Source: Trichosphaerium sp. ATCC 40318
Taxonomy: Eukaryota; Protista; Tubulinea
Reading direction: 5' to 3'
DNA length: 64,000 nt
Assembly: GCA_038496445.1 (NCBI GenBank)
Contig: JALMLS010000577.1
Coordinates: 1,116,001 to 1,180,000, forward strand
Shown here piece by piece: positions 35,257 through 47,169 of this stretch. The notes below the pieces were generated by a model. That model worked only from the letters and a program-made list of their open reading frames with translations, did no database searches and was not told the origin of the DNA. The first letter of the stretch is position 1, and each line of letters starts with the position of its first letter. The position numbers and the translations under genes were made by a program.

Positions 35257-36068
35257 TTAAAGACAAAAACCGATCGCAAATCCTGGAGTACCAATGTTGT
35301 TCATTCCAAGAGGATCAATTCCAGACATATCTACTACACTATCACACCAGTTTGATCCAGTATTTGCACAACCTGTACTTTCGCAAAACACGGTCAAGCT
35401 TGTTGAAACTCCTTGAACTGTTTGTGGGAAACCGGCACCGCCTACTGTTTGTTCGAAAACAGGGTTGCCATCACAAGACAGAGTGAATACTACAGCTGTA
35501 TCTGGAGAGAAATTTGTAGGTGGACTGAATTCATAATCATAAGTAAGGCCCGGCAATGTATATTCAGGAAAGTTTTGGTTGTTTCCAAAGACTATTATAG
35601 GGGCTGGCCCGGTGCGCTTCAGTTCTATTCGTGGTAGAGTATAGTCTTGACCATCAACATTCAATATGCAACCCTCTAGGTTTACCACAACAGAATGAAA
35701 AGCTTTATAAGATAACTCAATGAACTGGCCGTCTTGTGGATTCATGCCATTAGGGTTCACCATGAATTCAGTAATAATCATTTGGTCTTTTACCGGTCTA
35801 TACATCATTAATGTTGGAGGGTCTGTCGTTGGTGGCTCGGTCACCATAGGAGGTTGTTGTTGGTGGAGCAGTAGATGGAGCTTCTGTCGTTGGCGCTTCG
35901 GACGTTGGAGGCTCTGTAGACGGAGCGCTTGGTTGAAATGCTCCACAATCTTCTATCTCGCACAAAACGTTGGTGGATTTGTCCGCAGAACAGCATCTGT
36001 CAATAGTTTTAGATGAAATGGGAGGGTATTCGTTTAATTTCTGGTATTGTTCTGCGTTAATAACAATA
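35257..36068 (-). pseudogene. 3' exon of the interrupted secreted gene: Cys-rich segment, PT linker, bacterial-type lamin-tail domain; 1-nt frameshift near 35855
   Basis: From 36068 it reads IVINAEQYQKL...PSTEPPTSEAPTT and needs a 1-nt shift to continue QPPMVTEPPTT...IITEFMVNP...GQFIEL...NWC...GTPG. Confidence 0.75.
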
Positions 36069-39000
36069 CTATTGTAGGGTATCTTCAGAGAAACCCATTT
36101 TGGAACTGATCTTTAATTTATCAGCCCAATTTGCACGTATGTAATGTCGGTCGCTGTCGCTGTTCATACTCCACTTCGCTATATCCATATATACGACTCT
36201 AGGTATGTCACCGTAAGCTGCAAGCGTCGCTCCCGTAATACGGCCTTGTCGACCGCCAGCTCTTCCTTTGTGTCCAGCATATTTAGCAACGCTTTTGAAA
36301 ACTGCTGATATGCCAGATGGACCCAATCTAGTGTTTTTGTTTTTTAATGTAGTGAAAAACGGCTTTGTATTCCACTTCTGAATAAAGTTGATGTAATCGC
36401 GTAATATCTTTACTGGACACATGTACTCGTCGCCAGTCGCATCAATGTTTACCACATGTGGTACTCCTCCTTGTGATGTTTTTGTACGCATAAAAGTGAC
36501 AACGATTTTGCCGTCACGATATACCACATGGTCTCTGTCCAATATTTCTGTCACTTTTGGTCTTTGCATGCATCTGATGTACAAGGCTATGATAGCACCG
36601 TCACGGAAATATTTGTGGTCGGGTACACGTTTGTACGCGTGTTTGCGCCAATGTAAGAGCCATGTCATATCAAATGTTGGCATCTTTTCTTTTCTAGGAC
36701 GCGCTTTTGCAATACCTTTTTTCACTAACGAAAGCAAGTGAGCATCGTCTTGTTCTGTCGGAGGTTTGTATCCTGCTGCATTATGGATCATCGTGATTGC
36801 TGCTGACGCTGTACGACCAATAGATGTAGCGCCTTGTCGATAACGATGTGTAATATACATCGCCACTGTTGCCGGTGTTGTAGGTAAGTATTGAAACTTA
36901 TGATCCTCACAATACTGTGTAAAGAGATACCACTCTCTACCATAAGAATTGTAAGTGTTGTATGCGCTGCTGTCAGCAATAAAAGCACCAATTTGTTTCA
37001 AGTTGATGTCGTCTGCGTTTTCGATTTGAAGTGAACTGCCAAGTACGTCCATCGACAGTTCTTGAACGGTTCTACGAAACCACTTGCCCCTGTCAGAAAA
37101 ACGTCCTGTCCTGAACCGAGCTCGATGAAGTCCGTCTGCATCTGTAGCACCAACGGCCACCAAGGTTGAGCCGCCCACACCGGTAGTACGACTGTTGCTG
37201 TCGCGTTTTGTTCGCGAATCAGTCTTAGCACGCTTCCTATAAGACGTGCTGGAGGACATGCGTAGTTTATCTCGTTCCTCCAACAGGTCTGAAAATTATC
37301 ATGGTATTATACCGTACTTTATGGTATAATCACCTTTTATGGTACAAGCTCAGTATAATCCATAATTATACCATATAATTATACCATAAAATATGGTATA
37401 ATACCATGTTTTTTGGACAAATGGTATAACAGCCATTATACCATGTTTATACCATATTTCAATTTATAGAATATAATTATACCATAAAACATGGTATTAT
37501 ACCATGGTATTATACCACATTTTACAGTACATTATACCATGCATTATACCATATAATTATACCATAAAACATGGTACTATACCATGGTATTATACTGCAT
37601 TTTAAAGTATATTATACCATGCATTATACCATATAATTATACCATAAAACACAGTATTATACCATGGTATTATACTGTATTTTAAAGTATAGTATACCGT
37701 GCATTATACCATATAATTATACCATAAAACACGGTATTATACCATGGTATTATACTGTATTTTACAGTATTGTATACCGTGCATTATACCATATAATTAT
37801 ACCATAAAATGTGGTATTATACCGTGGTATTATACTGTATAAGTATAAGTTAGTCAAAGCTCACTTGGTCTATACTTGATTTAATAGCCTTTGGCCCTAC
37901 GCAAACGCCATACCACACAATGCTTTGACAGTAGCCGTTATTGAACATAATTGGCATATAAATGTGTGAAAAACAGTTTTAAGAGAGAAATCTGGTAACG
38001 CGCCCCAATTGCGGGCGTTTTAGGGATAAATTGGCCAATTTTCTCCGATTGACAGTATTTGAGGAAGAAACCACTCCACGTACCCCATGTTAGAACGCTA
38101 CAGTGGTAGACACACCAAAAACGCGTTTAGCGCTTGAAAAATGCCCATTCGCAAAAAACCTCCAGTTGGAGGTTTTTTTCCCCGGCTCTCATTTTTTTCT
38201 CCCCTCCATAGGCATTTTTACACTCAATCAACGCCATACAGCCTCATTTACCAAATCAGGAGCAAAATTATTTATTTTTTTTTGACATTTTTGATATACG
38301 CTCCAATGCATGTTAAAACGCGTGAATAGTGCTATAAGGCCAAGTTGTTTCAGAGCCTACCCATTTTTTGAGTTTTTTGGTTTTTTTTGGATTTTTTTGG
38401 ATTTTTTTGAATTTTTCCCTACTAAACGCCCGCATTTGCCAGAACAGATAGCATTTAGGCTTCACACCCATGCGTTGACCTTACGAGTGATATTATAAAC
38501 CAATTGGCTAAGTCAGAGCACAAAACTAAGTCTTGTCCAGTTTATCGCCCGCACAACACAAGGTACGCTAAAAGTAGTTGTTTTGAAGCCGCTTGCCATA
38601 GGTTTTAACCAAGCTAAATAGATGATAAAAAAAAAACCAAGATGTGTTAGCTAACAGGTACGATTCCGCTAGAACTTGTTTCCGATGAAGTTGGCAGTTA
38701 TTTTCATTTCTTTGTTTTAGTCTTGGTTTGGCTCCACCACACAGGTCATTTGTTACTCCCAGTGCTGCCACCACAACAAAACAGCAATTTTTGTACGACT
38801 ATTTATTTTGTGCATCAAGCCTTCACTAATTCTTCTTCTAGTTTTCATGCTATGTCCATTCGAAGCACTTACAGCAAGTACAATATTTTTTTTGAAGGTT
38901 ATTTGATGTGTCAACTACCACAAAAGAGGATATGGACAAAACCAAAGGTCACGGATGTAAACAAAAAAATGTATTAATAAATGTGGTTTTATTATTAGAA

Positions 39001-41863
39001 CAGTTTTTACACGGTATAATACACTTGGTTTTGTGGTATAATCTACCAAGTTTTAAGGTATAATATACCAGACTTTGTGGTATTATACTGTGTTTTATAC
39101 CATGTTTTATGGTAGAATTATACCATATATTGCATTTTTTCAGATGAAAAAATATGGTATAAATTCGCACTTTCTACTGCATATTTATGGTATAATTTGG
39201 CTGTTTTATGGTATAAATCCTTTGATTTATGGTATATTATACTGGAATTTGTGGTATAAAATTGTAATCAATGGTATAATTATACCACAAATTCATGGTA
39301 TCTACCATAAAAACAGCTCGAGAATTTTAGACCTGATCCTGAGCCATTCCATTCACCGCTTCTGTGCCTGGTTGATACCAGCGTGTGTTGAAGCGATCCA
39401 GCTGTGTGTTGTATGCTGTTGCGAACCTGTCGACTGTGTGAGGTCCGAACGCTTGCTGTATTTGGTGAAAGAAAGACGGTCTGATCATCCAATCTTCGAC
39501 GTCTATCAATCGACTCGGCCAATCCGCAGAATTCTCCTCGGACGGTATCCACTGCGGTTTTAGCAGTGTTGCATTTTGTTGCAGAAGGAATAACCACGTA
39601 TCCTTCACTATCTTGTCTCGCGCCGGGTTGCGAGATCCTCTCCAAAGCCAAGACACTACGCTGGTGCTGTCGATCTTCATCTGCACTACTCTGTCTTGTA
39701 CAGGGCTGAAACTAAATAAGGCTTTTTTTGCAAAAGCCATTTTTTTGCCACCAAATACAGCCTTATTTTTCACCAAATTGCCTTGTTTTTGCCAAAAAAA
39801 ATGGGCAAATATGAGGCATTGCCTTGTAATTTTGGGCTTTGGAGCCTCATATTTGGGCCAAATAGCAAGCAACTGGTTCACTAATTAGCCTTAAAATAGC
39901 CTGCATTGTTGGTCCAATAATGCCTCATTTTTTGTGCAACAATAAGGCATTTTTGCCCTCAATTTTTGGGCATAACCCAGGCACCATATACTCATAAAAC
40001 AAGGGTTTATATAGGCATACAATAGTGATTCATTTATTAAAGTACAGTACACAAAACACAAAAAACTTCAATGTCCTCCATGTGAAAAAAAACCTTTAGT
40101 TAAAAAAAAAATTAACAAATTATTGGTATAATTTTCGCGGACTGGAAAAATGGTTTAAAGTACCTATACTCCTGTTGTAGGTGGATTTGGGTGCTGCGGT
40201 TCGAATGGCGGTGGTTTCGTTAGAATCCATAAAATACTAAGCGCGTGGTGACGGCGTCTATATAAAACGTCAGTAGTAAATGAAAAAAAAATGTTTAGGA
40301 AGTGTTGGTGTGGTGGAGACTTACCTTAAACCAATGTATCCTTAATGTACAATGTGTACACAACCAATGCCTAATTGGTGCCTATAAATTTAAGGCTGGC
40401 AATGCATAAAAAAACTAGGGCAGGCATTGCCTAAAAAAAACAAGGCATTGCAACAATTAAGGCATTGCCCAACAAAGCCTTATTTCAATGCCTGATTTTT
40501 GCCTTTTCTGCCATTGCCTTTGCAAAATCAGGCATTGCCATTTTTGCATACCTGATTTTTGCCATCAATGCCTGATTTTAAAAAAATGCCTTCATATTTA
40601 AGGCAAAGCCTTGTTTAGTTTCAGCCCTGTATTTGCGCTTTGTATGCTTTGAGGGCTAGATGGACTGCCCATAACTCTAATTCGTTGATGTGCAATCCTA
40701 GTTGAGGTTCGTGCCAATTTCCTCTGGCTTGTGGTAGACCTTTGATTGTTCCTGACCATGCTGCTTCGGATGCGTCTGTCTCGATGATAAATACGGTTTC
40801 TTTTCTCCACAATGTTTTGCCGTTCCATCTCAGAAGTGCTTCTCTCAACCACTCTATGTCTGCTTGTAGTTGAGGGTCTGGGCGTACCAATGAATTCCAG
40901 TTCATCCAAGGCAATGTTACCTGTCCTATCGTGCGGTAAAAGCTGCGACAGAACACTCTTGCTGGTGTGAAAGCTTCTTTGGTTGCAACCAACTTTCCGA
41001 CTATGCTTGACAGCTCTCGTATGTGCACCAAATTTCTTCTTCGAATTGACTTTGATAATTTTTTCAATCCTTCGCGTATGTTTTTGATCTTCTTTGCTGG
41101 TACGCGTAACTCGCCTTTGCTTGTGTCGATGATCATACCCAAGTGCTCTATAACTTGAGTTGCTTCCCAGTGTCCTTTGTCTGGTTGGTTTTGCCAACCC
41201 AGTTTGTCGAACAATGGCTTCAGAATTGTATCTCTGATGTGTATCAATTCGTTCTTTGTAGGGGCTCCGATAATCCAATCGTCGATCCAAATTAAAAATG
41301 TTATTCCCATCTTCCGTAAGTGCCTGACCATAGCACGGTTTATCTTTGTAAACAGCCACGGAGCAAAGCGTACTCCGAAAGGCATTCTTGTCCACCGGTA
41401 AATCTTTCCTTTCCACACGAAGCACAGCCAACGCTGACTTCTCTGATGCATCTTTATGTGATGAAAGCCGGATCGAAAGTCGCCTGAGGCCATCCACCAT
41501 CCTAGACCTATTTGTTTTATGAACACTCCCAGCCCTTCGAACTTTGTGTAAGCTGGAGTGATTCCATTGTTGAGACCTCTTGCATCGAATACCATTCGAA
41601 ACAGGTCTTTGGTTGTTCCCTTTGGAACAAAATGAACTGGACTTATATGAAACGGATTCTCTTCTAACTGAACGACACCGGTTTTGAGAAGCTTCTTTAT
41701 TTCTGAAGTTCCAAACTGTTCTTCCTTCACATTCTTGATCCAATTCCCTCGTCTGTGCTGCCAAACAAGCGGTCGATCTACCAAGAATTCGAACCCATTT
41801 TTGATACCTTGTACTATCCAGTTCTCGGCGCCTATATCTCTCCACCCCTCCCATTTTAACCAC
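36069..41863 (-). CDS. Tyrosine recombinase ORF (interrupted by two TIR elements); N-terminal part overlaps pol in another frame
   Basis: SAM-like TYNSYGREWYLFTQYC...VAMYI, box I CMQRP, RTKTSQ, CPVK, GRQGRITGAT and AKWS...HYIR. After excising both insertions the frame is 2811 nt (937 codons) and open. Confidence 0.9.
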
Positions 41864-42096
41864 GGCGCGTGGGAGGTTGGAGAAGGTTTTTCATTGACCA
41901 CGGCTGCGACCGCGACCACGGTATCCCCCTCGCTGAAAGGCGTTACCACTGGGAGCATGATATTGAGTGCCAGGTGGTGCTCCGTTGTTTCTACCACCAC
42001 TGTTGTTGTTAGTAGCGTTGTTGCTACCACCACCATTGTTGCTGTTGTTGTTGCGTCCGTTACCGCCACGGCCACCGTTACGACCGCGACCACCAC
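36998..42096 (-). CDS. pol: reverse transcriptase + RNase H + DIRS-type DNA methyltransferase-like domain (interrupted twice)
   Basis: RT: DFRSGFHHI, MPFGVRFAP, IWIDDW. RNase H: ETDAS, HINELEL, IDS, NSADWPSR. MT-like: VDRFAT, QDW...NYACPP, LPVWAAQPWW. The reconstituted frame is 2115 nt (705 codons). Confidence 0.92.
37284..39335. mobile_element. Non-autonomous TIR element (2052 bp) with inverted ATACCAT-rich subterminal arrays
   Basis: Ends are CAGGTCTGAAAATT ... AATTTTAGACCTG. TATACCAT motifs dominate the left end and ATGGTATA the right. Removal plus one A restores both overlapping frames. Confidence 0.88.
37471..37840. repeat. 80-bp tandem repeat, ~4.6 copies, inside the 2-kb TIR element
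   Basis: ATATAATTATACCATAAAA at 37471, 37551, 37631, 37711 and 37791. Confidence 0.95.
39701..40629. mobile_element. MITE/non-autonomous DNA transposon, 929 bp, 25-bp TIR, TA target duplication
   Basis: CAGGGCTGAAACTAAAYAAGGCTTT at both ends (1 mismatch), TA at 39699-700 and 40630-31, and AGGCA/TGCC-rich subtermini. Excision restores AQIQDRVVQ in RNase H. Confidence 0.93.
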
Positions 42097-43213
42097 CGTT
42101 ACGATTGCGGTTACGCCTGCTGTATCGACTCTTAATGTTCATAAACTTAATCTTCTTTCGAAGATCACTTTCTTCTTTTGCTTTGATAGCATTGGCCTTG
42201 TCCATGAGTGTTTGATGAGCAGGAGGCATGCTATACAAAGACTTATCCTCCAATACTTGTTTAGTGACATCAACACCAACCTCCTCGATCATAATAATCT
42301 CGGTCATCATCGCCAATATTGGTTTTATGGATGGATCAGAGGCGGGCTTGTTCTCACGCTGTGCAATTCTGCACAAATTCTCGTACTGTTTATACGCAAG
42401 TCGACGCGCTTTCGATTCAACGCCTGTACCCCATGATATGCTGTTTGACGGTTCAAAATATACCAGCTGATGTATATTTGTAGGTAAAGTACCAACTGGC
42501 AAAGAAGGTACATACACTCGATTTGAATTGGGCATAGGGACGTTCGTAGGTACTGAAGGAGGCGCTTGCGTGCGTGTGTTTTGACGTGCCGAAGTATCAC
42601 GCTCATTATTTATCCACCGGTCTTCATGCTCGATATCTCTCATGTCGCGTACGTCTTGATCCTCTTCGAGTGCTCTCGCTAGATTATCCTCTAAAATAGA
42701 ATTCAAATCGCTACACAGAGAAGCACGAAATTCTTTAAATTTGCTGTCGATAATAGAAGAGAGCTGCGTTGGAATAATTTGCGTGCCGTTTAGGGCCTCA
42801 TTTATTACGTGAGGCTCGTTTTTACGTGATTTATCGTCCGTAGACGCCTGAGACGCTTGTCTCAGTGTTAAGGCTTCCTTTACTCCGACAAATATTCTTC
42901 CTTCTTCTATTTTAATCGCTGTGCTTAGGGCAATCTCTAGCTGTTCTTTAATCGGTCGTGTGTCGGGAGATTTGTCGTAACACAAAGTAAAATTATGTGT
43001 TGAGTCGGTGTCGACTAGCAGTCGATATAGGTGATAAGCATTGCCTTCTATGCCATCTCCGGGTAAATATTGCATCCCCATGTCGTGATAAATTTGCTTC
43101 AACCACATCTCGTTAGCCACGCCTAAGCGTAAGGCTGGCATCTTTTTTATAAGGTTTTGCCAATAAATTTCCTTTTTTACCGCTGAACTAACTACGTAAC
43201 TACCTTCAGACAT
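41891..43213 (-). CDS. gag-like ORF of the YR retroelement
   Basis: 440-aa intronless ORF upstream of and overlapping pol, with an RGG/Asn-rich basic tail. No CCHC knuckle seen. Confidence 0.75.
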   Translation of the reverse strand: MSEGSYVVSSAVKKEIYWQNLIKKMPALRLGVANEMWLKQIYHDMGMQYLPGDGIEGNAYHLYRLLVDTDSTHNFTLCYDKSPDTRPIKEQLEIALSTAIKIEEGRIFVGVKEALTLRQASQASTDDKSRKNEPHVINEALNGTQIIPTQLSSIIDSKFKEFRASLCSDLNSILEDNLARALEEDQDVRDMRDIEHEDRWINNERDTSARQNTRTQAPPSVPTNVPMPNSNRVYVPSLPVGTLPTNIHQLVYFEPSNSISWGTGVESKARRLAYKQYENLCRIAQRENKPASDPSIKPILAMMTEIIMIEEVGVDVTKQVLEDKSLYSMPPAHQTLMDKANAIKAKEESDLRKKIKFMNIKSRYSRRNRNRNGGGRGRNGGRGGNGRNNNSNNGGGSNNATNNNSGGRNNGAPPGTQYHAPSGNAFQRGGYRGRGRSRGQ

Positions 43214-43304
43214 CTCACCAGTCTTAAAAATAGCTATCGTAGGATTGCGGAAACGTTGTTACGTTCAAGGAACAAAAGGGCTTAAGAATATCGTATTGTT
43301 AAGC

Positions 43305-43436
43305 ACTTTGAACAATACCTACAATAAGTTAAGTACCATTACTTACACACATAATAACACTAATAGCAGAAAACTAAAAATAGAAATAAAAACCAGTTGT
43401 TTATTTAAGTGAGAATACAATCACGCATTTGTACTT
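43305..43436. repeat. 132-bp direct repeat R, inner copy
   Basis: Identical to 45565-45696. Contains the endonuclease C-terminal codons, the stop, AATAAA (minus strand) and one TAAG-N8-CTTA site. Confidence 0.97.
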
Positions 43437-44207
43437 TAATACCAGCAATAATACAAGAATGTCCACGGCATTGGCCATTTCTCTTACACCATCTTCTTGA
43501 ACTGTTAACTTTACCAGGCTCCAAGACAATGTGATCTGGGTTAGTACAAAAGGTACAATGACACAAGTGTGATGCATCTACTAAAGTACGGGCCAAACCC
43601 GGATACCATAAGTAGTTGCCATCAAGCCCTTTGTCAAACAAAGTAATGCCCTTCTCCACATATAGAACTGTATGGGCTAGATTGAAAAGTCTGCTCATTT
43701 TTCTGGTTCTAAATACAGCACGGAGGTACCCTGCACTAGTGGTTGACCCTCTGGTGCACAATTTGCACCCGGTATCTAGAATATACAATAAGTTTCTGAG
43801 TGATTACTTTGGTTGCTTTGTTAAGGTATACGCTTAAGCACACACACAATAACCCTAATAACAAAAAAAAACAAATTTAAGGTACCTTCAATATCAATTG
43901 ACTTTACTCGCATGGACTTTAACTTTGCTTGGGCAATGTCCCAAGGTAAAGTGCGAATATCTGTGGCAATGTGCCTTACATGAGCATCATTCCATTCTCT
44001 CTTAGGTACACACATTGCAACATAGTCATTAGTGTTCATTTTTCCAAGCGGTGTATTCCATGTTCTAGGCATACGCTTGTGTGGACACAGTGGTGGGTGA
44101 AATGGTTCAACAATGTGAAAGAAAGGAGTTCTTTTAGCAAAGTACAAGGGGCTGTACAGTTTCTCTGGGCCGGTTATGGTGTAGTAATTAGGCAAGTGTT
44201 CACACAT
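43405..44207 (-). CDS. His-Cys box / His-Me finger endonuclease (I-PpoI-like zinc-binding loop), 2 exons, 230 aa
   Basis: Exons 44207-43886 and 43775-43405 joined by a 110-nt GT-AG intron give 693 nt in frame. Motif ASHLCHCTFCTNPDHIVLEPGKVNSSRRWC...CRGH...C. Confidence 0.85.
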
Positions 44208-44329
44208 TCTTGAGGAGGCGTTGTTGTTGTTGTGTTGGATGTAGAATTATGATATAAAAGTAGTCGAGTAAATCGATCTTGTATCACTCAGATTTTTTCA
44301 ATCAACATTTATCTGTTTTCAATCACTGT

Positions 44330-45560
44330 AAAGTGTGTATAAGGATGTGTACTTAAAACGTAATAGCCCGTATCAAACTATACTCAGGATTGATTATGCA
44401 TTGTTGGTTAAGGTAATCAACTTAAAATAAAATAGCCCGTATCAAAGTACAACTTTTCAATCACCTTTTGAATGTGATTAAGGATGTGTACTTAAAACGT
44501 AATGACTCTAATGGTGGCAAATACAACATTGGTTGTTGGCGAGGGTTTTAAACAATCTAATTTGTAGTTGTAAACGCTTTTGGAATCAATCTGGTAACTG
44601 TGTTAAGTAGGTGAACTTAGATCGTAATAGCAACAATCAATCTAGTGTAACTGTTTTAAGGATGGATACTTAAACAACAATGGCAACAATCAATCTAGAT
44701 AAAGTACATTAAGGATGTGTGCTTAAACTATAATAGCAACAATCAATCTAGATAAAGTGTATTAAGGATGTGTGCTTAATGCATAATGGCAACAATCAAT
44801 CTAGTGTAAGTATTAAGCATGTGTGCTTAAACTATAATAGCAACAATCAATCTAGATAAAGTACATTAAGGATGTGTACTTAAAACGTAATGACTCTAAT
44901 GGTGGCAAATACAACATTGGTTGTTGGCGAGGGTTTTAAACAATCTAATTTGTAGTTGTAAACGCTTTTGGAATCAATCTGGTAACTGTGTTAAGTAGGT
45001 GAACTTAGATCGTAATAGCAACAATCAATCTAGTGTAACTGTTTTAAGGATGGATACTTAAACAACAATGGCAACAATCAATCTAGTGAATTGTATTAAG
45101 CAAGGAAACTTAGTGTACAATGGCAACAATCAATCTAAATAAAGTGCATTAAGGATGTGTGCTTAATGCATAATGGCAACAATCAATCTAGATAAAGTAC
45201 ATTAAGGATGTGTGCTTAAACTATAATAGCAACAATCAATCTTAGAGTAATGGCTATTCGCCAATGATACTAAGTAATACAACTTAATACAAGATAGCAA
45301 CAATCTGGATAAAGTACATTAAAGATGTGTGCTTAAACTATAATAGCAACAATCAATCTAGATAAAGTGCATTAAGGATGTGTGCTTAAACTACGAACTT
45401 TGATCGTAATAGTACCAATCAATCTAGTCTTAATGTGTTAAGGTTGAATATGGATTTATACTTCAACTTGTAAAGGATTGGACCTTGAGCTGTTTATAGT
45501 TGTAGTTTTATCAATCCATAATCAGTATTAATCTCAATATGGTTAAGCATGTGTACTTAA
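44330..45560. repeat. ~53-bp-period array of AATRGCAACAATCAATCTAG plus TAAG-N8-CTTA dyads, with an internal 222-bp exact duplication
   Basis: Dyads at 44340, 44409, 44479, 44604, 44657, 44710, 44763, 44814, 44867, 44992, 45045, 45097, 45150, 45203, 45271, (45320, 1 mismatch), 45373 and 45544. 44477-44698 = 44865-45086. Confidence 0.95.
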
Positions 45561-45564
45561 AATG

Positions 45565-45696
45565 ACTTTGAACAATACCTACAATAAGTTAAGTACCATT
45601 ACTTACACACATAATAACACTAATAGCAGAAAACTAAAAATAGAAATAAAAACCAGTTGTTTATTTAAGTGAGAATACAATCACGCATTTGTACTT
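45565..45696. repeat. 132-bp direct repeat R, terminal copy (2 bp from the junction core)
   Basis: Identical to 43305-43436. Confidence 0.97.
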
Positions 45697-45700
45697 CGTA

Positions 45701-47169
45701 CTACGTAGAACAATGTAACATTAGTTTAAAATCTCGTACACGTCATTGCCACCACCTCCATTAATCGTTGGTGGACGAATAGAAGACTGAGTGCTCCCTT
45801 TGGCTGTTATGCGGTCATTTCCATTTCCACCATTGATATTACCACTTCTGGACTCAAAGTCGCAGATATCAATATTATCAACACCACTACCACCATTTAT
45901 GGTGTTAAATATAACATCGTTCATAGCAATATGATCAGCACCACTATTTCCTTTAAAAATTGTCAAAAAACAAGGTTTTTAAAAAGCACGTGACTACGAA
46001 AATAATGAAAAATGGCACGCAAAGCAGATGTAGTGTAAAGATATTTGAGGTTTTTTTTGGGTGAGTTTTTCTTTTACGTTACCTGTAGCTTCGTCAAATT
46101 CTGTTTTGGTTGCTTTTATACAATCAGCTCCAGCGCCACCAATTATTAAATCAATCATAGAACTCATTTGTCTTTTATCTGAACCTACAAGCAAGATAGT
46201 CAGACGAGACAAATAATCACATGGTTTTCTTCGTTTTTTTTTCAAAGACTTTTTTTGTAAAATCCTGTACCTTCACGCTTTCCAGGTTCTGGTCCAAGAA
46301 TGTCAATACAATCAGCTCCGTTTCCAGAGTTTATGTTTCTCCTAAAATAAAAATCAAAATCTTTGAGCGAGGAACATAGAAAACATGGTAATTTTTTTGC
46401 TGAGTTTCGTTTTCGAGAGAAAAAAAAATAGAACAAAACCACTAATCTCGTACGCTTCACAAGAGGTCAATTTTATCCAATCAGCGCCACCATTAGTGAT
46501 GATATCTTTGTAAAAAGTGAGTTGAAGAAATAAAATTGTACCAAAGAAAGTAAATATTAGCTTACCTCTTACAACACTGTTTTTTAGATATACACAATCA
46601 CCACCTGTACCTGTCCAATTTTTTAGCAAGTTACGTAACTTGTACAAAAAAACACTACTGGAGCTCGGTTGACTTACCTGTTTCAATGTCACGAACTTCA
46701 GCACCGTCACCAATAATATATCCACTCCTTCATTAGTGTTAATATCACGTGTTATTTCGCTTCCGGGGTCTAGAAAGACGCAATCGACACCATCCGTTCC
46801 TACTATGACGCGTATACTTGTGTCTGTAGTGACAATAACACAATCCTGATTTCGTATTCCTACAAAGAAAATCTCATTAGGAACAAACATTAGGTGAAAA
46901 AATTGAAAAAAATAAACAAAAGGCATACTATTTCCTTGGCTATTTTGGCTTGTGGCGGTGAAGCAAGTTCCTGCCGCCCTTCGCCACATACAATAACTAA
47001 GATCGCACGGAACGCAATCATCACACGCCTGTGCGTAGCACGAAGCTACTATTGTTACAATGGTAAGTGTTTGAAGGTTAATAGTACAAAACAAACGAAA
47101 GGGGTGGTTAAATACATTACCTAGTAACACAACTAGCGAGACAAAGATGGAAGCACTAAAACCACTCAT
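45701..47169 (-). pseudogene. 5' part of the interrupted secreted gene with RTX/hemolysin-type GGxGxD Ca-binding repeats, multi-exon
   Basis: Signal peptide MSGFSASIFVSLVVLL. Repeats GTDGVDCV, TGGDCV, GGADWI, GNGADCI, GGAGADCI, GGSGVDNI, GGNGNDRI and GGGGND. Last intron is 45739-45701. Confidence 0.8.

Follow-up and report, generated by a model that had tools for sequence, protein, structure and literature searches.

How does a single insertion site come to hold the genes of a retroelement that encodes a tyrosine recombinase (YR), a homing-type nuclease gene and a long array of palindromic sites? The question is raised by a 64,000-nt stretch of the genome of Trichosphaerium sp. ATCC 40318 (Tubulinea; GenBank assembly GCA_038496445.1, contig JALMLS010000577.1, positions 1,116,001 to 1,180,000, forward strand), to the whole of which we refer as the window and in which all unattributed coordinates are given. 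The interval 36067-45703 of this window (9637 nt, minus strand, described throughout from 45703 down to 36067) is a single 9.6-kb composite insertion made of a YR retroelement, an I-PpoI-type nuclease gene and an array of palindromic sites. Our analysis further indicates that the retroelement and the nuclease module have a 132-nt repeat, R, in common by descent, whatever the order of the events that joined them. We regard the composite as real and unusual, and as best filed among the YR retroelements.

The limits of the insertion are fixed by the reading frame of the gene that it interrupts. When the interval is removed and flanks of ~90 nt are joined by script, the minus-strand host frame closes (...INGGGGND, a 39-nt GT..AG intron, VIVINAEQ...), as the original prediction held, and the insertion position proves to be the 3′ splice site of that intron. 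TACTA stands at both ends of the interval (Table 1), and with boundaries set independently by the host frame, a shared 5-mer would be expected by chance in about 1/1024 of cases. The repeat is symmetric in form, TA-N-TA; read along the element it is TAGTA, and the first three bases of its 3′ copy (36069-36071) are the TAG stop of the YR open reading frame (ORF), which ends exactly at the element boundary. Between these ends the minus-strand order is R1-array-nuclease-R2-gag-pol-YR, all inside the one site, and every part of this order was recovered. Subtraction of two later insertions in pol, one counted as 931 nt (a 929-bp element plus one TA) and the other as 2052 nt, leaves 9637 - 931 - 2052 = 6654 nt with the frames kept, in agreement with the 6.65 kb proposed for the reconstituted element.

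Also as proposed, the element has neither of the end layouts expected in its presumed relatives. Within it there are no inverted terminal repeats (ITR) and no internal complementary region (ICR), and no inverted repeat involves its ends; nor are there split direct repeats of the A1 ... B1-A2-B2 form, the sole long direct repeat being R1/R2, both copies of which lie in the 5′ 2.4 kb. Two apparent resemblances at the ends were considered and rejected. Complementarity of the 3′ end to the inner edge of R, seen by eye, is at chance level (for the final 30 nt, the highest-scoring inverted match reaches 20, the shuffled mean being 20.0 +/- 2.1), and the likeness between the target and R's end (GTAG-TATTGTT) was dropped as within chance by estimate.

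Table 1. Features of the composite insertion and of the gene around it, in window coordinates and in minus-strand order
Feature	Position	Strand	Remarks
Disrupted host gene	35257-36066 + 45704-47169	minus	flanks of the insertion
TACTA, 5′-side direct repeat	45699..45703	.	2 nt (CG) between TACTA and R1
R1, 132-nt terminal repeat	45565..45696	-	orphan last 10 nuclease codons + stop, AATAAA, one 1-mismatch dyad-like site
Array of 18 TTAAG-N8-CTTAA sites	44339..45560	-	modal spacing 53 nt; ~1.2 kb
Nuclease exon 1	43886..44207	-	ATG at 44207; 107 codons + 1 nt
Putative nuclease intron	43776..43885	-	110-nt GT..AG, spliceosomal; splice predicted from sequence
Nuclease exon 2, His-Cys box / His-Me finger	43405..43775	-	stop 43405-43407 overlaps AATAAA
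R2	43305..43436	-	identical to R1; overlaps nuclease 3′ end
gag-like ORF, 440 aa, N/G/R-rich tail	41891..43213	-	no family match; overlaps pol ORF
pol part 1: reverse transcriptase (RVT_1) + RNase H start	40630..42096	-	Pfam
Nested transposable element #1, 929 bp, non-autonomous, terminal inverted repeats	39701..40629	.	TA-flanked, inside RNase H
pol part 2: RNase H end + methyltransferase-like stretch	39336..39700	-	Dam E 0.038
Nested transposable element #2, 2052 bp, non-autonomous, terminal inverted repeats	37284..39335	.	short terminal inverted repeats; between pol and YR
Tyrosine recombinase ORF, 404 aa	36069..37283	-	PHROG, NCBIfam, profile match
TACTA, 3′-side direct repeat	36067..36071	.	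read from sequence

The link between the two halves of the composite is R. Its copies agree at 132/132 nt and start 2260 nt apart, and 91 nt separate R2 from the gag ATG downstream. R begins with AAGTAC and ends with CAAAG, without TG..CA ends, and no second copy of the 5-mer follows R2; the R1-array and R2-gag joints are each unique in the window. The start of R falls inside codon 118 of nuclease exon 2, and R2 encodes exon-2 residues 118-127, that is, the last ten nuclease codons including the invariant Cys124, followed by the stop codon and AATAAA. Because R2 encodes the conserved 3′ end of the nuclease, it is native nuclease-gene sequence, and R1 is the copy. Since this copy forms the 5′ terminus of the whole insertion, the nuclease module is tied to the ends of the element; had a nuclease cassette inserted secondarily and at random, its 3′ end would not be expected to make up the terminus of the element.

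The nuclease itself, whose exons were searched separately, is readily recognised. Exon 2 matches the Pfam family PF05551 (zf-His_Me_endon) at 6.4e-11 and 43 bits, where the cut-off is 27, and, in the PDB, I-PpoI at 4.9e-5; among 1.84 billion representative proteins it has 255 matches, the best of which (3.6e-15) is merely 40% identical, so that its kin are distant. In an alignment of exon 2 with 13 of these 255 matches, ten residues are invariant (S73, H74, C76, C81, H86, E90, N95, R98, C107 and C124), and all of them are kept here, so the His-Cys box nuclease named in the original prediction appears, by sequence, to be catalytically complete. No start codon precedes the domain in exon 2, and an upstream ORF that begins with ATG joins it in frame through the putative intron. 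This first exon has no kin in Pfam, NCBIfam or PHROG, nor among the N-termini of 164 retrieved proteins, and no group I intron or other Rfam RNA was found around the nuclease gene (43200-45800, at E up to 1). The gene is intact, while the copy of the element in which it resides is broken in pol. A comparison of codon use and GC3 between nuclease, retroelement and host, with two segments set out of frame, did not discriminate and is given no weight.

Next to the nuclease gene lies the array. With up to one mismatch allowed, TTAAG-N8-CTTAA is matched 20 times in the window, always within 43329-45606 (18 in the array and one in each R), against 6.1 expected, and 0/100 shuffles reach 20. Successive sites are mostly 51-53 nt apart, or some five helical turns. 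The motif extends past the array proper, in that a TTAAG-N7-CTTAA copy can be read inside the nuclease intron and TTAAG motifs recur in the gag leader beside R2. When the 18 units are compared, conservation is highest in the columns of the two 5-nt arms (80-100%), the spacer of 8 nt and the flanking positions being variable; units that have diverged retain the arms despite quite different spacers. This pattern of conserved arms and variable spacer fits binding by a dimer, possibly of the nuclease or of the recombinase. For the suggestion that the array serves in regulation or recombination, the sole support is the better conservation of the arms relative to the spacer. The array also holds a higher-order duplication of 388 nt (44477-45242) whose copies are 93% identical. 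At ~7% divergence, zero differences over 132 nt would have a probability of ~1e-4 by our own calculation; given that R1 and R2 do not differ at all, the structure of the array predates the duplication of R. The array would consequently have come in with the insertion or by later recombination at R, rather than having formed after R was duplicated.

The remainder of the insertion carries the genes of a YR retroelement, and reverse transcriptase (RT), traces of RNase H and of a methyltransferase (MT)-like domain, and a YR were all found where they had been predicted. The RT is the firmest of these, with an RVT_1 match at 2.7e-14 (53.8 bits, cut-off 29.6); its nearest solved structures are foamy virus Pol (8.5e-10) and Ty3 (6.7e-9), and a protein-database search returned three matches of 25-29% identity. 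Its nearest kin in the databases lies in a locus, L003 (25% identity, tblastn 1.6e-19), where an MT-like ORF and then a YR come after the RT. The 96 residues before the first nested element give sub-threshold matches to RNase H (RT_RNaseH_2, E 0.008; RT_RNaseH, 0.068), and a tblastn match to the part of L003 behind its RT scores 5e-5. The MT-like stretch reaches the Pfam family Dam at E 0.038-0.057, under the cut-off and over profile positions 12-48 only; the second half of this domain, present in L003, is missing at the joint with the second nested element, which may have brought a deletion, unless the domain is naturally short. The N/G/R-rich tail of the gag-like protein is encoded, within the gag/pol overlap, by a 33-nt tandem repeat of 2.3 copies (41983-42054). 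The proteins of the element have no match to a DDE integrase (rve) or a protease, and neither a transposase ORF nor a transposase match was found in 36067-45703.

That the 404-residue ORF is a tyrosine recombinase we hold with moderate confidence. Its catalytic half (residues 181-398) matches the PHROG 216 integrase at 8.4e-4 and its N-terminal half (residues 105-189) an NCBIfam XerD-type tyrosine recombinase model at 0.031. With hhalign, it aligns over 261 columns (E 4.8e-5, probability 68%) to a profile of eight YRs found with the YR ORF of L003, six of which have Pfam Phage_integrase matches and one a Phage_int_SAM_4 match; in the alignment, R, K, the second R, W and Y are in place. There was no Pfam match, no PDB match by phmmer and no match in the large protein database. 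An ATTAAA lies 50 nt upstream of the stop codon of this ORF.

Two further mobile elements interrupt pol, and both appear to be later arrivals rather than parts of the retroelement; the frames across them were read from translated 45-nt flanks. The first has terminal inverted repeats matching at 24/25 nt, which start with CAGGGCTGAAAC, and inner repeats of the AAGGCATTGCC type; with it removed, the pol frame reads ...ALKAYKAQIQDRVVQMKID..., and there is no second copy of it within the window. The second ends in short CAGGTCTRAAA repeats, carries subterminal inverted arrays of GGTATAATACC dyads (at 37464-37840 an 80-nt period repeated 4.7 times, and at 39013-39290 a set in inverted orientation) and holds a (TTTTTGGATT)5 run; its ends show no target duplication, and on its removal the pol frame continues to the YR ORF (...NGMAQD/LEERDKLRM...).

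Does the combination recur elsewhere? In the window, blastn and tblastn found no further copy of the element; the exact gag ORF is absent from the assembly index, as is an ORF of the host, a metagenome scan with RT peptides returned nothing, and a scan with the array-unit pattern returned two chance matches. Longer fusion proteins of the nuclease family carry only C2H2 or HNH_3 domains, and one match of 857 residues (P0012) has two zf-His_Me_endon stretches fused to a run of C2H2 zinc fingers, on contigs of up to 386 kb. At two loci, L001 728-4097 and L008 2757-5786 (JGI metagenome 3300035016), which hold the two nearest nuclease relatives on contigs of sufficient length, the nuclease has the same transposase-like ORFs behind it in the same orientation; these ORFs are ~33% identical between the loci. 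No Pfam family is recognised in those of L001, and those of L008 have no precomputed Pfam match on record. These loci look like another kind of mobile element that bears a His-Cys box nuclease. In the literature, no YR retroelement bearing a nuclease of this kind came to light. The original prediction, an undescribed lineage that couples three enzymes, accordingly stands in part: the combination appears undescribed and the RT, YR and nuclease genes are all present, but the lineage is represented by one copy in the window and none found elsewhere, and functional coupling was not borne out. We consider such a lineage plausible, strengthened as it is by the shared R and resting on one broken copy.

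How, then, was the composite assembled? We give about even odds (a probability of roughly 0.5) to its having moved as one piece, as a two-R intermediate of retroelement and nuclease units that integrated just upstream of R. The body of the insertion would be a young DIRS-order YR retroelement, with gag, RT/RNase H/MT-like and YR regions, and the 5′ 2.4 kb a nuclease module. The two units, R-gag-pol-YR and R-array-nuclease, would have R in common as a portable joint, with R2 serving both as the native nuclease 3′ end and as the gag leader and R1 as the copy that is now terminal. Recombination or template switching at R would generate a two-R DNA intermediate, circular or concatemeric, which the recombinase would integrate at a TAGTA common to the target and to the joint just upstream of R; a crossover in this shared TAGTA would place the 5-mer at either end although nothing had truly been duplicated. 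The nuclease would be an accessory passenger of the homing type, and the array a set of dimer-binding sites for a protein encoded by the element. All of the adjacencies observed, namely nuclease body-R, R-array, R-gag and YR end-(TAGTA, CG)-R, are met by two units sharing R, so that a two-R intermediate would yield the whole layout in one step. Support also comes from the single insertion site with its 5-mer at both ends and the closing of the host frame and 39-nt intron, from the recurrence of the dyad motif in each R and, in the form with 7-nt spacing, in the nuclease intron, and from the kinship of the RT with an element that has RT, MT-like and YR regions. For DIRS1-like elements, integration has been modelled as recombination at a short (3-bp) junction sequence identical to the target, which leaves no duplication (PMC3266345).

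Several observations weigh against this proposal. Nothing is repeated at the 3′ end, and it is hard to see how the ends would be regenerated from an RNA copy; the retained sense-strand intron would be awkward for passage through a spliced RNA. A 5-bp direct repeat would be unexpected for DIRS-order integration and would fit a staggered cut equally well, so that the repeat may be either a shared crossover sequence or a true duplication. Only a single copy is at hand, and the module has not been seen travelling with the retroelement in other insertions; none of the five loci that hold nuclease relatives (L001, L002, L004, L005 and L008) has one beside an RT or a YR. The recombinase, finally, is below threshold in each single test (the hhalign probability of 68% included), the His of its HxxR motif faces an Arg, and its AlphaFold models are unusable, with predicted local distance difference test (pLDDT) values of 30.6 from the single sequence and 41.8 from an 8-row alignment.

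The best of the competing accounts, which we nevertheless consider doubtful, assigns the two halves to successive events: R-gag-pol-YR would have inserted first, with TACTA at both ends, and an R-array-nuclease unit, circular or ectopic, would later have crossed into R in the Campbell manner, the module being no constant part of the element family but, on occasion, its parasite or partner. One crossover within R would yield exactly R-array-nuclease-R-gag with identical copies of R, and a 2260-nt circle of array, nuclease and R would keep the nuclease ORF intact over its joint. Moreover, nuclease relatives ride a transposase-like element at two diverged loci, which suggests that the gene family moves between mobile elements. 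Even so, R must still be common to both units, so that the nuclease stays linked to the element family under this sequence of events too, and neither a free R-array-nuclease unit nor a cassette-less copy was found. The module may be a constant part of the lineage or a one-off recombinant at R.

A different origin of the same constituents, which strikes us as rather unlikely, is a new YR lineage that natively bears the nuclease with its cognate array, in which R would be generated by replication and a 5-nt cut by the nuclease would open the target, with or without the recombinase. Such a staggered cut would explain a 5-bp duplication that is not supposed for DIRS-order elements. The cut can also be considered by itself: the His-Cys box nuclease, not the recombinase, would have cleaved the target with a 5-nt stagger, and the joining and fill-in of a cDNA or DNA copy would have made the 5-mers a true 5-bp duplication. 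Nuclear His-Cys box enzymes leave 4- or 5-nt 3′ overhangs, those of I-DsqI, I-NjaI and I-DirII being pentanucleotides (PMC9548176), the repeat here is 5 bp long and of the symmetric TA-N-TA form, the nuclease is predicted to be catalytically complete, and the absence of a duplication in DIRS1-like integration (PMC3266345) points the same way. The target, however, is unlike TTAAG-N8-CTTAA and has no dyad symmetry beyond TA-N-TA, an intact YR is encoded too, and cleavage by the nuclease is itself a prediction, all of which makes a break of this origin improbable.

That the parts are unrelated neighbours seems very unlikely. An LTR-like R-array-nuclease-R would have come first, and the body of the YR retroelement would then have landed between R2 and TACTA. 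Taken alone, R-array-nuclease-R does resemble a small element with terminal repeats, and nested insertions are frequent here, as the two in pol attest, but such a history requires the retroelement to have hit the exact base that parted R2 from the duplicated 5-mer, R lacks TG..CA ends, no second 5-mer follows R2, and the gag leader by R2 again has TTAAG motifs. Short-read graphs do mis-join at exact repeats, but there is very little chance that an array-nuclease-R loop was mis-threaded into the locus through the 132-nt repeat, given that the window is gap-free, a conserved ORF runs unbroken across the joint of R2 with the nuclease body, neither the R1-array joint nor the R2-gag joint occurs a second time in the window, and 132 nt is trivial for long reads.

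The surroundings of the insertion are those of an intron-bearing genome. The window has a G+C content of ~38%, GT..AG introns of 39 to ~140 nt and zero N; its ORFs include RasGEF, F-box and MORN_2 domains, and neither tRNA genes nor Rfam families (at the gathering score) were found across the whole of it. The interrupted host gene combines RTX-type GGxGxD nonapeptides, which lie in the upstream exon and match Pfam HemolysinCabind weakly (E 0.047), with a Thr/Pro-rich linker and an exon bearing an EFMxNP lamin-tail-like motif. This architecture is that of a bacterial-looking secreted protein, yet the gene is eukaryotic, with introns, and no feature of it points to a toxin.

To our knowledge, no order of retrotransposons is less well understood than the YR retroelements. 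The regeneration of their ends and the entry of their DNA are debated, with circles and linear single-stranded complementary DNA as the contending forms (PMC7192593). An element that has neither known end layout, is flanked by a 5-bp repeat and encodes a second DNA-cutting enzyme would be a natural test case for end regeneration and DNA entry in YR retroelements, and the dyad array beside the nuclease gene offers a candidate recognition site that can be tested directly.

Compared with known systems, the nuclease is closest to the homing endonuclease genes of nuclear group I introns (I-PpoI, I-DsqI and I-NjaI), with which it shares the conserved catalytic residues and zinc ligands. A small spliceosomal intron, putative in our case, and an AATAAA at the stop codon are likewise features of the nuclear His-Cys box genes (PMC9548176). 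Known enzymes act as dimers on sites of partial symmetry, where their cuts leave 3′ overhangs of 4-5 nt. Unlike these genes, the one described here lies outside ribosomal DNA and outside a group I intron, free-standing in a retroelement beside a dyad array, and has an extra exon of 107 codons without known kin.

The order pol then YR is that of PAT, and the element here has it likewise. With the PAT-like members and the DIRS order at large (PMC3266345), it has in common a gag-like ORF, an RT of the retrovirus/Ty3 type with a trace of RNase H, a trace of a Dam-like MT, a YR, the absence of a DDE integrase or protease match, and possibly a short sequence common to the joint of the element and the target. 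It departs from them in its single pair of 132-nt repeats, both of them 5′, in a 3′ end that stops at the YR stop codon, and in the extra 2.3-kb module of nuclease gene and site array. DIRS1-like elements are stated to be under 6 kb (PMC3266345), against ~6.65 kb here, and have the order gag, YR, pol with ITR and ICR, whereas our element has gag, pol, YR with neither; PAT-like and Ngaro elements have split direct repeats, and it has none. Long terminal repeat (LTR) retrotransposons differ from it in that it lacks a 3′ repeat, TG..CA termini and a DDE integrase match. Ngaro elements, as reportedly described by Goodwin and Poulter, have an extra hydrolase-like ORF downstream of the YR, and would resemble our element in adding a single accessory enzyme gene to gag, pol and YR; that ORF is said to be no nuclease and to follow the YR, in elements with split direct repeats and no MT domain. 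The RT and YR are just 17-29% identical to the nearest sequences found.

The other point of comparison is KolobokP, a family of DDD/E DNA transposons reported in 2022 that combine an I-PpoI-type nuclease with long direct repeats at their termini, and for which circles, multimers sharing one repeat and nuclease-stimulated recombination have been proposed (PMC9587614). It is the only transposon family with a nuclease of this type that we found described in the literature, and in a 2017 review the His-Cys box was absent from the kinds of homing endonuclease recorded for eukaryotic transposons (PMC5718144). Like KolobokP, the composite is a eukaryotic mobile element with a small I-PpoI-type nuclease and long direct repeats. 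KolobokP, in contrast, codes for a transposase of the DDD/E type and has at both ends direct repeats with terminal inverted repeats of their own, whereas the present element has an RT and a YR but no transposase, and R is without such inverted repeats and is absent from the 3′ end. By its sequence features, then, the element lies outside the DIRS1-like, PAT/Ngaro, KolobokP and LTR families, each of which differs from it in a defining feature. As a second carrier, unrelated to KolobokP, it would show that this nuclease family has repeatedly been recruited by mobile DNA or has repeatedly parasitised it.

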